Shown: positions 9,819-50,234 of the stretch, piece after piece
How positions within the stretch are numbered: position 1 is the first letter of the stretch
How the letters are laid out: the number at the start of each line of letters is the position of its first letter
Source: Trichosphaerium sp. ATCC 40318
Lineage: Eukaryota; Protista; Tubulinea
DNA: 64,000 bases
Reading direction: 5' to 3'
Assembly: GCA_038496445.1 (NCBI GenBank)
Contig: JALMLS010000353.1
Location: 372,001-436,000, forward strand
The notes under the pieces: model-generated
Databases searched by the model: none
What the model was told of the DNA's origin: nothing
The model's input: only the letters and a program-made list of their open reading frames with translations
Translations under genes and position numbers: made by a program

Positions 9819-10314
9819 ATGCGTTTACACCTTATCATCACCTTCACTTTTGTCCTTATCGTAATGCGAATACAAAAGCCTGCGACATCTTCTTACTTCA
9901 ATCTAGGTAGCTTCACAGCCACCTCCTTGCTGTCAACTTCTCCCTTCTGGTAGATGCAGGGACATATCTTGTGCTCGTAGAGGCGTCGCGTTTGGACAAC
10001 CAACAAGTTGTATACCCGTTGTAAGAGCAGTCCCAGGAGGTACGTGTACAATCTAAACCAAGAAAAGCTCTTTTACTTCTCGTAGTACTTATCTGTGATG
10101 GTTTTTAGGGCAAACACGTGATTGTATTTGTGTTCCGAGAGACCCAGTTTTAAGAGAGCGAACATGCGCCACGCTTGCCCCTCCAACCTGCCAAGATCTT
10201 GCTTGTACCAACCGATTGAGAGCTATTGGATTCCCTAATCCTCCTGGTTGTACATCAGTTCTTACAATACCACTCGGCACTCAAAGACAGTGTGTATGCT
10301 CTGTCTGTTATTAA
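9819..10314 (+). CDS. Small secreted cysteine-rich protein with two tandem 6-Cys modules (absent from ORF track)
   Basis: Three exons joined by GT-AG introns give MRLHLIITFTFVLIVASQPPPCCQLLPSGRCRDISCARRGVAFGQPTSCIPVVRAVPGGQTRDCICVPRDPVLRERTCATLAPPTCQDLACTNRLRAIGFPNPPGCTSVLTIPLGTQRQCVCSVCY*. Confidence 0.8.
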
Positions 10315-10443
10315 ACAAGAAGTAATAAATAGCATATTACCTTAGCGACTTAAACATTTTCTGTCTTCTATGTTGTCATGCTTTTTTATTCTTCAAATAA
10401 ATGATTTTTCTATTGCCTCATAAAATTCTTGAACTTTTTTTTT

Positions 10444-11169
10444 AAGGGGGAAGAAGATGCATTAAGATGCATCACTTAACAGCATGTATAGAGTTGTTAT
10501 ATGTGGTGTGTGATACTAAAGGGGAATTTTATGTATTAAGACGTCTCACTTAATAGTGTACACTGTTTGTATTAGGCTACAAAGGGGGAAGATTGTATGC
10601 TAAGTTCCGTCACTTAACAGTGCACACAGACGCTATTGTGCAATAAAGGGGGAAAATGATGCATTAAGGTACACCACTTAACAGTGTATAGACTTGCTAT
10701 ACGTGGTGTGATACTAGTTTCACAAACACGTCTCTTTACTGGGGCAAATAAGTGTTAAGACAGACCACTTAACAAGTTTTTTGTTAGTACCTACCATTGG
10801 CAGCGTACTAGAGCGCTATTGGAGTTAAAGCTTGTGAAATTAAAAAAAATTCACAACCTACACGTCATCATTACACAACACTTTTTTTTTCAATAAATCA
10901 TCTCTTATAGGGGCGCTTTTGTGTTTAAGATGACTCACTTAACCTCATTGAACAATACCACCACTGGCAGCGTACTAGAGCGCTTTAAGTGGCTCAGCGA
11001 AGCCCATGCGAGCTGCAAATATCCTGAGTTTTCTGGGAAATCTTTGAGCTGGTATCAAAGATTTCCACCTTGTGACTACACATAGCTGGTTCTTTAATAC
11101 ACGTTACAGTTTTATTTATAGTACATTTTTTTATTAAGTTTTACTAATGGGGGTGGTAGGTGTATTAAG
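10444..11169. repeat. Array of six complete and one interrupted GGGG-N10-NTTAAG-N6-CACTTAAY modules
   Basis: CACTTAAY at 10473, 10547, 10611, 10675, 10766 and 10936. Each is preceded 6 nt upstream by (A/G/T)(T/C)TAAG, with a G4-5 run 9-10 nt further upstream. A seventh left half lies at 11149-11169. Confidence 0.9.
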
Positions 11170-11459
11170 TAAGGGGGCACGCTGAGAAAGGAATGACCTT
11201 AGCTCCACGGGCATCTTCAGGCGCGTAAAACGCTCGAACTGTGTAGATTGATTACTTGAGTTCTGTCTTGTGTAGAGCAAATTCGTTATTTTTTTTTGCT
11301 TTCAAATTGAGACTTTTTATCCCATAGCATGTACTAAGATGCTATGGGTAATGTAGTTTTGAACAAATATCAGTCGCAACTTTTGCAACTCACAATATTA
11401 ATCATGTCAACACGAAAATTTTTTGAACAATTTCTGCACATCTCAGCGTGCCCCCTTAA
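11170..11459. mobile_element. Non-autonomous DNA transposon (MITE), possibly Kolobok type
   Basis: Perfect terminal IR TAAGGGGGCACGCTGAGA (11170-11187) / TCTCAGCGTGCCCCCTTA (11441-11458), flanked by GTAA/TTAA. Internal 10-bp hairpin CCCATAGCAT/ATGCTATGGG. No ORF. Confidence 0.75.
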
Positions 11460-11594
11460 GGCATAAACACTGTGCGTTGGTAATGTATACAAAAAGTTTT
11501 ATCAAACATTCACTATCTTATACTCTATTAATCCCAAACACTATTTCTATGCGTGAATACTTCTCCTATCTTTTTGGGTCTTGTCAGTTGCTTA

Positions 11595-13080
11595 CTAACA
11601 TGCTTGCTGCCTTATGAAAAGTCTGTTCAATTTTTTCACACGCCATAATTTCTGACCATTCCAACCAACCATCTCTACAAATTGCGCAGAATCCCCTATT
11701 GAAACTACGCTTATACCATGGCATGAACGAACATCAACTTGGACTTTATGAGAGTATCTACTATGGTCAACATTTCCATGCTGAACATAATGAGACCACT
11801 TCGTTTTTCCATTGTTTTCAACCATAGATAATTCAACACCACTATCGAAATACGGTGAATAGGCATAGGTAAGTATTGTTCCATCTCCAAACAATAGAAA
11901 TCTAGCAGGAGACTCTACTGAAACGTCTGATTTCCATTGAAGGCTTAACTTGTTTGCTTCGAGTTTGTAACAGTGCACTTGACAATCTGAACTGATAAAC
12001 ACTTTATCATTTAGGCACTCGAAACTTTTACTAGCAAAAGGAAGTAGTGCTACTAGCTTACTTGATTTAATATCAAAGATAGTTGTACTGCTCTCAGCCT
12101 TTACATTATGTCCATTTATCTGTTTATAAGGTCCTAGTTTGGCAATAGATAGCAGATTCTCACTAGCAGAAATACTTAATGCACTTGCTTTGGCTACAAT
12201 TGAAATGATGTTTTTCTTCCATATTGTCTTTCCTTCTATTGAATGTTAGTCACTTTCATGTACAGTGGTTCCTTTGTCATACCTTTAGATATATTCAAGC
12301 AAAATAACATCCTCTTTTTTGGTATATATGCTGTATCACCATCAAGGCAAAAGAGAAGATCTCCAGAAAAAGCTATAAGAGGGTTCCTAATACCAATTTT
12401 TTTTTTCCATTTTGTATTTCCAGTTTCAATGTCAACACCCAATATATGTTTCTTTGTTGTCAATATAACAATGTCATGGGTAATTAAGTGATTTTGATAG
12501 GCTTTCACCATCTTCGGGGTTGCCCACAAGTTGCGACCGCTTTCTGTTTTGAGCATCAAATACCATATGTCAACATTAGCACGACGTAGTCCAACATGTA
12601 CTTCACGTGGTTTACGTTGCCAATACGAGAGTTCAGCTTCTCTAGAAATATTCAATATCTGTCCATTAGTAACATCTAACTTATCCTCGTTCTCTATAAA
12701 CACAAGAGGCGCCTGTAGAGTAAAGAGATGATTAACATTCAACAAACAACTTTTTTTTTCAACTTTCGAGAACGTAAAACCAGGTTTTTCGTCGGTTGAC
12801 GCACGTGTTGTTTATGCTCAATATAAGAAGCAAAATAAAAAACATCTTGCCACGAAGAGGACGTTAATATGTCGACTGGCCAACGACATTTGGGACCCCA
12901 ATGAAGTATCGGCCATTTTTGTCGTAAAAGAAACGAAGCCGACTTGTAGTTTCGCAAAATACTTGAAATTGTTGTGTTTGTGCTTGATAAGTACAGTATC
13001 GATTGAAAACTGTCGCAAGCGCTACAAACCATGTAAAGAGTATCAATTGAACATAAGACTTTGTCTGAGAGCTTTGACAT
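11595..13080 (-). CDS. F-box-like + PQQ/BamB-type beta-propeller protein
   Basis: Three ORF-track pieces join in frame through GT-AG introns (...KNL|APLVFIE..., ...NISK|EGKTIWKK...). Repeated D..TG...W motifs (GVDIETGNTKWKK, NNGKTKWS). Weak F-box-like N-terminus. Confidence 0.6.
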
Positions 13081-48200: not shown

Positions 48201-50234
48201 ATCATCATTACGTCTGGATGGATCTACTCCTTTGAATGAGAGAAAGCGTAGAATAGATATTTTTAATAATCCCAAAGGACGTATTGATTTATTCTTGATA
48301 AGCACAAAAGCTGGTGGTCTTGGGTTGAATCTTACTGGTACTTTTAAACATAACTTGAACGTTGTTTTTTAATGAAACATAAATTAGGAGCCAATATTGT
48401 TGTTGTGTATGACGCCTCTTGGAATGCTACACATGATCTTCAAGCGCAGGATAGAGCGTATCGTATTGGTCAAACGAAACACACTGATATTTACAGACTT
48501 ATATCTGCTGGTACAATAGAAGAAATGACGTATGTGAAAGGCCCTTGCTGGGAGTACGTTTTGTTGACAGGATGTAGGTATAATCGGCAGATATACAAAC
48601 AACAAATGGCTGGTATAGGTATAGAAGGGACGTATGAGCGTAGGTATTTCACTGGTGTGGAGGGAGTAAAAGGACAGGAAGGAGAAATTTTTGGGTTAAT
48701 TAATCTCTTGAAACTTAGTAGCGATAAGCTGTTCACAAATGGTAACTATTTTACATGATTCGCCAACGTATACTAAAAAACTATTTAGATATTATAGAAA
48801 AAGCTAAAGATTCCGAAGAAAACTACATTGTAAAGGAGAACAAACTCAATAAGGAACAGCCTTCAATGCTAACTGGTACTGGCAAGTATTAATAAGTTAT
48901 CTAAAGTTTGTATTCTGTAGGTTTGTTTGATAAACCTTCATCTCAAAACGAATCTACAATAGACCTCACAGGAGACGAGAAACTTATTGATCTTGACACG
49001 ATAGCATCGCGTACGAACCTAGAGCTTTGTCCTTTGTCTTTTTAATAGCTTGAACGCCTTGTACTAACTTTTCTTAAGAATTGAATAACAAATCTTTCTC
49101 AGTGTTCGATGATGATGTAGCCAAAGCACTTGCCGCTTCTGGTGTTTTGTACACTCACCGAAATAGGGTACACTTATACCTTTCTTCTTTTTTTCTTCTT
49201 TTTTTTTTGAAAATTAAATGAATCAAAACGAAGATTTCGTTTGCATAGCTAATTCGTCAGTGTGCATCGCCTTCTCTGTGTGGCTTCGCGCACTGGCGAC
49301 TTAATTAGACATGTAGTACCCTCTGTAGTGTAATGGCAAATCACGCTTGGTTGTAGCCCGAGAAATGGTGGTTCGATTCCATCCGGAGGGATTTTTTTTT
49401 ATTTGAAATTCATATTCTATTTTCGCTTATTATTGTAACACATCTGCTAATACAATGCACAGGATATTGTGGGTGAAAGTAGAGCTGAAAGACAGCTTGC
49501 TAAACAGCTAGAGGAAAAATACAAAGGAAAACTTGGTTCTAGCCTAATGCCTCCTACTATGCCTAGAACGCCTTATTCAAATACTCCACTTGGCAACACA
49601 AACTTTACGCGGCTTATCCGCTCGAATAATAGCTTAAATATGCCAAGACAACCGATGACCTTTAACCCATTCCTTTCAACGCCTAGCGCTAGGAATTTAC
49701 AGACACCTCTGTTTGGTAAAGATACTTTATCTGTTCCTGGAGCAATGGCGCGGCCGGGTATAGCGCCTACATTTGGTAAACCTGCAAGGAAGCTGAATAC
49801 AGGTAACTTTTCATTCAATGGTACTTTGGGATCAGGTGTGCGTCGTCCATGGTTAAACAAAAATGCTTTATCAAATCCTGGCTCTATGAAACGTCCAGGT
49901 ATAACACCGACGTTTGGTAAACCTTCAAAGCGATTTGGCTATAATTTCAAGCTACCTACAGCGAACACTAATAATGTGGTACGTTTATTCAGAACCGACA
50001 CTGAAATGTCTTTTTTTTCTAATGTACTATTTTCTGAAGGTCAATATTACTACACAGGATCCATTAGAGTTAATGGAACAGAGCGCCAAGGCAATGGGTC
50101 TTTGGACACCGATGATGGAGCAAACCAATAAGACACTTTTGCGTCAGGCAGCCGAACGTGCTCGGAAGCAAGCTGAACTTGCGGAAAAACGGAGGAAGCC
50201 TAATAACAGTGAACCCATTGTAATTGAAGATTGA
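45264..50234 (+). CDS. ERCC6L2: SNF2-family helicase ERCC6L2/RAD26L-like
   Basis: [81 protein letters not shown]...GEIFG and a VIGSSK-like YTHRN.DIVGES. Confidence 0.85.
46094..46313 (+). other. U12-type (minor) GT-AG intron
   Basis: Donor GTATCCTTTT; branch-like ACCTTGAC ~10 nt before AAG. Removal joins IKFL|FKLFKQKTG. Confidence 0.8.
48066..48132 (+). other. U12-type AT-AC intron
   Basis: Donor ATATCCTTT; branch GCTTAAC; ends ...GATAC. Removal restores the conserved GHK|[14 protein letters not shown] helicase motif. Confidence 0.92.
49319..49391 (+). tRNA. tRNA with GTA anticodon (Tyr), intronless, inside an ERCC6L2 intron
   Basis: Cloverleaf: acceptor CCCTCTG/CGGAGGG + A73, D-arm GTGT/TCAC, anticodon arm CTTGG-TTGTAGC-CCGAG, T-arm GGTGG-TTCGATT-CCATC. 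Followed by a T9 Pol III terminator. Confidence 0.9.

Follow-up and report, generated by a model that had tools for sequence, protein, structure and literature searches.

The array of tripartite motifs found in a stretch of DNA from Trichosphaerium sp. ATCC 40318 is very probably part of a single insertion, at positions 10446 to 11455, of a non-autonomous cut-and-paste transposon of the Kolobok type, with the modules of the array apparently serving as alternative or auxiliary left ends. The window, i.e., the whole stretch that was analysed, comprises 64,000 nucleotides (C28:372001-436000) of a 70-Mb, 642-contig assembly, and coordinates given without a contig name refer to it. It is eukaryotic in character, being without long ORFs, 38% GC, and endowed with one tRNA. 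The latter is a tRNA-Tyr (GTA) gene at 49319-49391, which is the sole match in the window with Rfam or ARAGORN. Among the readings put forward in the initial annotation was that of stacked Kolobok-like transposon ends, and this was essentially right: the insertion is flanked by TTAA and has GG..CC termini, and its relatives encode a Kolobok-type DDE transposase.

To the left of the array, plus-strand ORFs with a DUF1963 match extend up to 9082, and to its right, minus-strand ORFs with a PQQ-like match run from 11595, consistent with the earlier description of two genes converging on the array. The insertion between them is 1,010 bp long, has the termini 5′-GGGGG...CCCCC-3′, and is bounded by a TTAA duplication at 10442-10445 and 11456-11459. 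It consists of two parts. Part A, the array, makes up the left 727 bp and lies outside the inner left inverted repeat; it is composed of seven units in the same orientation, of which four are short, two long, and one partial. Part B, the right 283 bp, is MITE-like, with a 15-bp terminal inverted repeat.

A paralogue of both flanks on contig C16 preserves the empty site. There, the two flanks (74–82% identity) are directly adjacent with nothing between them (C16:512790-512830). The empty site reads TTTTTTTTA joined to GGCATAAACAC, and the window reads TTTTTTTTTAA, followed by the 1,010 bp, and then TTAAGGCATAAACAC. This junction falls no more than 1 nt (one A in a T/A run) from the predicted boundaries. 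Because the flanks adjoin at these boundaries, the array and the MITE part must have arrived together, in a single TTAA-duplicating insertion. The paralogous segment as a whole pairs window positions 10333-12200 with C16:512671-513398 at 74–82% identity, and takes in the intergenic region plus the 3′ part of the right-hand gene. The features of the insertion are as follows.

10442-10445, plus strand: left target-site duplication TTAA, from the sequence and the matching right TTAA; the C16 empty site joins here
10446-10520, plus strand: short module u1, with GGGGG at 10446-10450, TTAAG at 10462-10466, core ATGCAT, CACTTAA at 10473-10479, and a second stem; forms the extreme left end of the insertion; more stable fold than shuffles (z -4.1)
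10521-10583, plus strand: short module u2, with GGGG at 10521, TTAAG at 10536, core ACGTCT, and CACTTAA at 10547; folds no better than shuffles
10584-10647, plus strand: short module u3, with GGGGG at 10584, CTAAG at 10600, core TTCCGT, CACTTAA at 10611, and the stem TGCACA/TGTGCA
10648-10716, plus strand: short module u4, with GGGGG at 10648, TTAAG at 10664, core GTACAC, CACTTAA at 10675, and the stem GTATAG/CTATAC
10741-10909, plus strand: long module L1, with GGGG at 10741, TTAAG at 10755, core ACAGAC, CACTTAA at 10766, and then CCATTGGCAGCGTA, with TGGCAGCGTA at 10798; corresponds by homology to the first long unit on C5, C94, C215, and C607
10910-11148, plus strand: long module L2, with GGGG at 10910, TTAAG at 10925, core ATGACT, CACTTAA at 10936, and TGGCAGCGTA at 10965; contains the core that is best conserved across the repeat family (~10960-11095)
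11149-11172, plus strand: partial module, with GGGGG at 11149, TTAAG at 11165, and then TAA; the C113 copy starts here, with a TTAA flank
11173-11187, plus strand: inner left terminal inverted repeat, GGGGGCACGCTGAGA, with GTAA and not TTAA in front of it
11188-11440, plus strand: internal part of element B, non-coding, 253 bp; shortened relative to the ~540-bp solo copies
11441-11455, minus strand: right terminal inverted repeat, TCTCAGCGTGCCCCC on the plus strand
11456-11459, plus strand: right target-site duplication TTAA, from the sequence and the C16 empty site

Six modules of the form GGGG(G)-N10/11-YTAAG-N6-CACTTAA occupy positions 10446-10942. When the window was scanned for TTAAG-N6-CACTTAA with at most one mismatch, six matches were returned, on the plus strand only, at 10462, 10536, 10600 (CTAAG), 10664, 10755, and 10925. 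Shuffled sequences gave a chance expectation of ~1, and none of 100 shuffles reached six. The G-runs start at 10446, 10521, 10584, 10648, 10741, and 10910, and the distance from the last G to YTAAG is 11 nt, or 10 nt in unit 5. These positions reproduce the six complete modules and the fixed G-run distance, shorter by 1 nt in unit 5, of the initial annotation. Its six cores (ATGCAT, ACGTCT, TTCCGT, GTACAC, ACAGAC, and ATGACT) are likewise recovered, all of them different, as are the perfect second stems of unit 3 (TGCACA/TGTGCA, 10621-10626/10637-10642) and unit 4 (GTATAG/CTATAC, 10686-10691/10697-10702). An additional, seventh module at 11149-11172 is partial, reading GGGGG-N11-TTAAG without CACTTAA. 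All modules share one orientation inside the TTAA-bounded insertion.

Divergence between the modules of the window is far from uniform. Pairwise identity is 0.97 at the 12 block positions of TTAAG and CACTTAA, compared with 0.34 for the cores and likewise for the downstream sequence, and 0.37 for the spacer; 0.27 is expected at random. Invariant columns account for 14 of 56, versus a mean of 6.6 in a uniform-rate simulation (P ~0.005). Since the blocks are kept and the cores are near-random, constraint is uneven along the module. These figures support the view, held from the outset, that the blocks are under selection rather than in neutral decay as parts of a satellite. The converse, a motif unique to this locus with evenly spread divergence, does not describe what was found, in that the motif is present elsewhere in the genome and the divergence is uneven. 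In the context of a transposon, the selection acting on the blocks is most likely for transposition competence.

A DNA search with positions 10440-11200 identified ~10 other loci in the 70-Mb genome, with 68–96% identity. The best conserved stretch, 10960-11180, is 82–87% identical to six other copies; three degraded copies show lower or partial similarity. Genome-wide, the full tripartite motif occurs only in copies of this repeat family (16 matches, versus 0 for a reversed control), and the exact motif is also found on C215 and C607, in each case with an upstream G-run. It had been suggested that such a scan might place the motif beside snRNA genes or at the ends of transposable elements. 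The latter was borne out, as the motif lies in TTAA-flanked transposon copies; the former was not, the motif being confined to one repeat family and found at none of six U1 loci.

The aligned copies follow a common plan: TTAA, two to four short units (60–75 bp), two long units (about 170–240 bp), a partial unit, and GTAA followed by GGGGGCAC. The second long unit holds a conserved core of ~140 bp (10960-11095). Within this core is a perfect 12-bp palindrome at 11036-11047/11055-11066 (GGAAATCTTTGA / TCAAAGATTTCC, with a 7-nt loop), which is kept in eight of nine other aligned copies (it is deleted on C265) and shows one compensatory change, T:A to A:T, on C19. Many short units of other copies have CCATTGGCAG in place of the CACTTAACAG of the window, and the spacing after TTAAG in those copies is 3–8 nt in short units and 5 nt in long units. 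Given these differences, the N6 geometry and the TTAAG/CTTAA dyad are features of one subfamily of units and not of the whole family. The exact N6 spacing first described thus holds for the six modules of the window and breaks down in the paralogous copies, with N5 in long units and N3–N8 in short units.

All four short units of the window are closest to one type of unit, represented by u2 of C215 and u1 of C607. For example, u3 of the window is 72–76% identical to these two units, and its core, TTCCGT, resembles their TTCCAT and TTCTGT, which indicates that cores are inherited and diverging and are not freely assigned. The notion that the cores are free is accordingly correct with respect to the near-random identity between modules of the window, and incorrect as a description of how cores relate between copies. 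Units within an array can also be similar to each other, as with u1 and u4 of the window (81%) and u1 and u3 of C215 (82%). Such a stack could arise by tandem duplication or by repeated end-to-end insertion with deletion, and the pattern of similarity appears to favour duplication of units.

The inverted repeat also occurs without the array. A search for TTAA plus inverted repeat (pattern TTAAGGGGGCACNCTG) gave 20 matches in the genome and 0 for a control pattern, and solo inverted-repeat elements with TTAA on both sides are present, such as that of ~540 bp at C100:181982-182521. Array-type ends (pattern TTAAGGGGGARSWT) were not found as right ends or in other elements; the four copies detected are all left ends.

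Two array-bearing copies are autonomous: C5:897576-900717 (3,142 bp) and C607:3858-7018 (3,161 bp). They are 98% identical, have TTAA on both sides within unrelated flanks, and possess 5′-GGGGG...CCCCC-3′ termini. In each, the array lies upstream of one uninterrupted ORF of 677 aa, located at C5:898366-900399 in the former. Directly after the array is GGGGGCACTCTG(G)AG, an inverted copy of the right terminus, which identifies it as the true left inverted repeat. The window insertion repeats this layout in miniature, with the array, left inverted repeat, 253 bp of internal sequence, and right inverted repeat. A third copy, C590:8979-11547, is 99% identical to the C5 element and starts with TTAA followed by GGGGGCACTCTG, without the array; it no longer has an open transposase frame, owing to frameshifts or stops.

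The 677-aa ORF matches the Pfam family PF20700, Mutator-like transposase (E 2e-27). Its motifs include ADGAW, D296/D298, DPGH at 319-322 (the D(2)H motif), H384, C390, C394, and E499, and all of these are invariant with respect to two homologs at 27% identity. A catalytic role for D296/D298, DPGH, and E499 is suggested by their position. Between the D(2)H motif and the predicted catalytic E is a Cys/His cluster made up of H384, C390, C394, and nearby Cys and His residues. The protein contains zinc-ribbon-like CxxC...CxxC motifs; it has no recognisable C2CH THAP domain, and Pfam detects no THAP domain in it. A word-based protein search recovered only two distant, unnamed homologs, which gave no indication of the superfamily. 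In the ESM Atlas, the transposase lies closest to clusters of PF20700 proteins, whose sources are mainly molluscs, arthropods, cnidarians (some with THAP), and parabasalids.

A separate feature of the protein is an F-box-like stretch at residues 415-451 (PF00646, E 6e-5, above the curated cut-off), situated between the D(2)H motif and the predicted catalytic E. The same annotation is present in homolog P0001 (27% identity), and homolog P0002 has a gap there. If real, such an F-box would hint that the transposase is connected with SCF ubiquitin ligases.

Kolobok elements are characterized by TTAA duplications, 5′-RR..YY-3′ termini, and a C/DxxH motif in common with hAT, P, MuDR, and Dada (PMC9587614). 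Among the copies described here, TTAA duplications with unrelated flanks are seen in the window and on C5, C607, C94, C215, and C113, the termini are GGGGG...CCCCC in all copies, and a DDE domain with C/DxxH is represented by the PF20700 match together with D296/D298, DPGH, and E499. In all lineages except Kolobok1, the Kolobok transposases also carry a zinc finger, located after C/DxxH and before the last E (PMC9587614). The corresponding interval holds the conserved H384, C390, and C394, along with nearby Cys and His residues, as a candidate for such a finger. On the strength of the TTAA duplications, the RR..YY termini, and the D(2)H transposase, the element is filed, provisionally, as Kolobok-type, a placement that it fits by Pfam, signature motifs, and the rules for target duplications and termini.

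Two other superfamilies were considered and rejected. MuDR/MULE elements have target duplications of 8–10 bp and inverted repeats of ~100–200 bp; here, the duplication is a 4-bp TTAA and the inverted repeat 15 bp, despite the Pfam name “Mutator-like”. The piggyBac elements share TTAA with the present element but have CCC...GGG ends in place of its GG..CC termini; in addition, PF20700 is the only Pfam transposase match. Kolobok elements are known from groups that include molluscs, arthropods, cnidarians, and parabasalids (PMC9587614), and in Xenopus the termini of Kolobok MITEs are AGGRR, with one family beginning AGGGGAACT (PMC6004289). The taxa of the PF20700 clusters, and the presence of THAP in some of them, speak indirectly for a possible affinity to Kolobok rather than to MuDR, P, or hAT. 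A literature search for transposons in Trichosphaerium found nothing specific. The element is a new family of a known kind of transposon, in an amoebozoan.

The case for the modules as ends comes from where copies begin. Their TTAA-flanked starts differ: C5 and C215 start with a u1-type unit; C607 starts with a u2-type unit, whose counterpart in C215 (u2, 88% identity) is internal and follows CATAAA; C94 starts with u3, identical at 63 of 63 positions to the internal u3 of C215; C113 starts at the partial module; and C54, C100, and C590 start at the inner inverted repeat. The flank beyond each TTAA start is unique to the copy. The three autonomous-type copies (C5, C607, and C590) are 98–99% identical, yet have three different left ends. 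This variety of starting points, with TTAA beside every one of them, suggests that module starts are used as alternative left ends. In principle, the different starting units could instead be the product of deletions after insertion, which would need to end exactly at TTAA.

A mechanism can be proposed on this basis. Each module would be a unit recognised by the DDE transposase of the element, with the GGGG(G) at its start offering a usable point of cleavage, and with YTAAG and CACTTAA (or CCATTGG) acting as protein contacts at a fixed distance, either for the transposase or for a cofactor. The cores and spacers would be unconstrained. An array of alternative or auxiliary ends would thus keep its blocks intact as its cores and spacers become randomised. 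Recognition of the modules by the transposase is something we infer from these sequence patterns, and two observations count against it. The modules and the 15-bp inverted repeat have in common only GGGGG and a purine-rich start, which makes it hard to see how one transposase would accept both, and the right end of the element is without a module. To our knowledge, Kolobok transposases have not been studied biochemically.

Other explanations of the array differ in how well they account for these data. One is that the modules are sites for host or transposon transcription factors that regulate the transposase, and that the window copy inherited them by internal deletion. In both intact autonomous copies the array is indeed 220–790 bp upstream of the transposase ATG, and a further module-like TTAAG-N12-CACTTAA lies within the inner inverted repeat, ~25 nt upstream of the ATG; moreover, conserved blocks fit any protein-binding role, and would follow equally from a promoter role in a master copy. 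A regulatory array is nevertheless unlikely when the 99%-identical C590 copy is entirely without one, when perfect blocks are kept in non-coding copies that have nothing to express, and when copies begin precisely at the G-run of a module, next to TTAA, as would be expected if modules act as ends. A stack with no function, i.e., relics of tandem duplication or of end-to-end insertion and deletion whose blocks reflect recent ancestry or gene conversion, is also improbable. Its strengths are that the units are homologous with a history of duplication (81% for u1/u4 in the window and 82% for u1/u3 on C215), and that short units vary in number from two to four between copies and differ in spacing as well. 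Recent ancestry would, however, preserve the cores too, whereas identity outside the blocks is 0.34–0.37 against 0.97 at the 12 block positions, and relics would not account for module starts being used as termini.

Much less credible is transcription of the array as a processed multi-hairpin RNA, a small RNA cluster, or a captured non-coding RNA gene. Two small stems are possible per short unit, with sequences that differ between units, and the conserved core has its perfect 12-bp hairpin with the one compensatory change in the C19 copy. Folding better than shuffles, which would also speak for an RNA, is limited to u1 (z -4.1) and u4 (z -2.4), the other four of the six units folding no better, and RNAalifold on nine aligned copies of the core gave a covariation term of +0.28, with double changes in two of 31 pairs. 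The multi-hairpin RNA of the initial annotation is left with little: two units fold well and covariation is negligible. At gathering thresholds, Rfam matched nothing in the whole window except the tRNA-Tyr, and in E-value mode positions 10300-11600 gave only chance-level matches (E ≥ 2.4), no family being matched even when E values as high as 10 were admitted. In other copies, the long units bear a loose resemblance to the U1 5′ end (ACTTACC...GGCAG), but the real U1 genes of this genome differ in sequence and promoter. Finally, tyrosine-recombinase sites of the lox/FRT kind, with asymmetric cores, can be regarded as almost certainly the wrong explanation. The TTAAG-N8-CTTAA dyad geometry is present in the six window modules, but its arms are only 5 bp, it is missing from homologous units of other copies (CCATTGGCAG-type or CCATTGG-type units), and the modules all point one way inside a TTAA-bounded insertion. 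The search for a linked recombinase or transposase gene that had been advised turned up a Kolobok-type DDE transposase and no associated tyrosine recombinase, and the earlier idea of recombination or integration sites falls with the dyad and the enzyme. Nothing in the analysis supports sites for origin or centromere proteins, another early suggestion, the array being the left-end region of a transposon.

The U1 resemblance led to a U1-like or snRNA gene being entertained as a candidate, which was rejected since the ~10 bona fide U1 loci differ in sequence and in their upstream element. Ten U1 snRNA loci were found, four of them above the Rfam cut-off (e.g., C122:19165-19328 and C144:124528-124691). 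In the six loci that were displayed in gene orientation, an A-rich ACCAC element, with the sequence AAAACCACA in three cases, lies ~50–60 nt upstream of the 5′ end, and the tripartite motif is absent from all six. With U1 genes carrying the AAAACCACA-type element and the tripartite motif confined to the array repeat family, the suggestion that the modules are upstream elements of small-RNA genes can be set aside. The 3′ box of the same six loci contains AAAGAAAAA, in two of them as ACCCAACAATAAAGAAAAA. Most loci have the 5′ end ACGUACC and two have ACUUACC, which may reflect U1 variants that pair differently with 5′ splice sites.

Returning to the modules as left ends, the closest known relatives are the Kolobok elements and their MITEs, such as the T2-MITEs and XKol of Xenopus (PMC6004289, PMC9587614), which resemble the present element in TTAA, RR...YY termini, the D(2)H motif, possibly the Cys/His cluster before the E, and an abundance of short, non-autonomous derivatives. 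In contrast to these, the present family has a one-sided array of pseudo-termini in the same orientation outside the true left inverted repeat, and its transposase has no Pfam THAP domain, an F-box-like insert, and a Pfam domain named “Mutator-like”. KolobokP elements likewise have extra terminal repeat units with ends of their own, and the composites, solo units, and multimers that these create act as alternative mobile units (PMC9587614). KolobokP is composite-like with long terminal direct repeats (PMC9587614), whereas the modules here are 63–75 bp and ~170–240 bp, occur at the left end only, and are accompanied by no second encoded protein.

Cut-and-paste elements with multiple binding sites are similar in having short conserved motifs at a fixed distance inside their ends, with unconstrained sequence between. 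The THAP sites of the P element are TAAGTGTA, TAAGTGGA, and TAAGGGTT, of which TAAGTGTA and TAAGGGTT are experimentally verified (PMC3698922). The likeness to these is by sequence only: TTAAGTG, the reverse complement of CACTTAA, contains the THAP core TAAGTG, and TAAGTGTA and TAAGGGTT occur verbatim in C5-type copies, with TAAGTGTA in their partial module. Unlike that of the P element, the transposase here shows zinc-ribbon-like motifs and no recognisable C2CH THAP domain. Specificity for TTAA targets is shared with piggyBac, from which Kolobok termini are set apart as 5′-RR..YY-3′ (PMC9587614) and the present transposase as PF20700.

A bolder proposal, which we put forward tentatively and rate at clearly under even chances, is that the array is a working, expandable cassette of degenerate, interchangeable left termini outside the canonical inverted repeat, used in recent transpositions by a Kolobok-type transposase and defined by no more than a G-run and two short blocks at a fixed distance. 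Were this so, one lineage could yield length-polymorphic copies, and its end modules could be added or lost. Such an organisation of the ends would be unusual among eukaryotic cut-and-paste elements, and would provide a handle on end recognition by Kolobok transposases. For specialists in transposons, these apparently interchangeable, stacked, degenerate left ends are the point of interest, and the nested TTAA-flanked left ends amount to a natural experiment on end recognition, with GGGG, YTAAG, and CACTTAA/CCATTGG as the motifs. The annotation of the genome gains a recently active Kolobok-type family with two intact transposase genes (98% identity), a MITE, and an array-bearing derivative, and an apparently exotic intergenic motif array leaves the list of candidate new systems.

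Two further loci show rearranged or isolated parts of the family. At approximately C94:15842-16960, the MITE part runs opposite to its usual direction with respect to the array, and the composite is still flanked by TTAA. This suggests either that the segment between the 15-bp inverted repeats was inverted or that the two parts fused independently. At approximately C157:144400-145600, a lone module-like GGGAAGAACACGTG-TTAAG-TTCCAT-CACTTAA lies among interspersed, telomere-like repeats of the CCCTAA type, and may be a subtelomeric fragment of the array repeat family.
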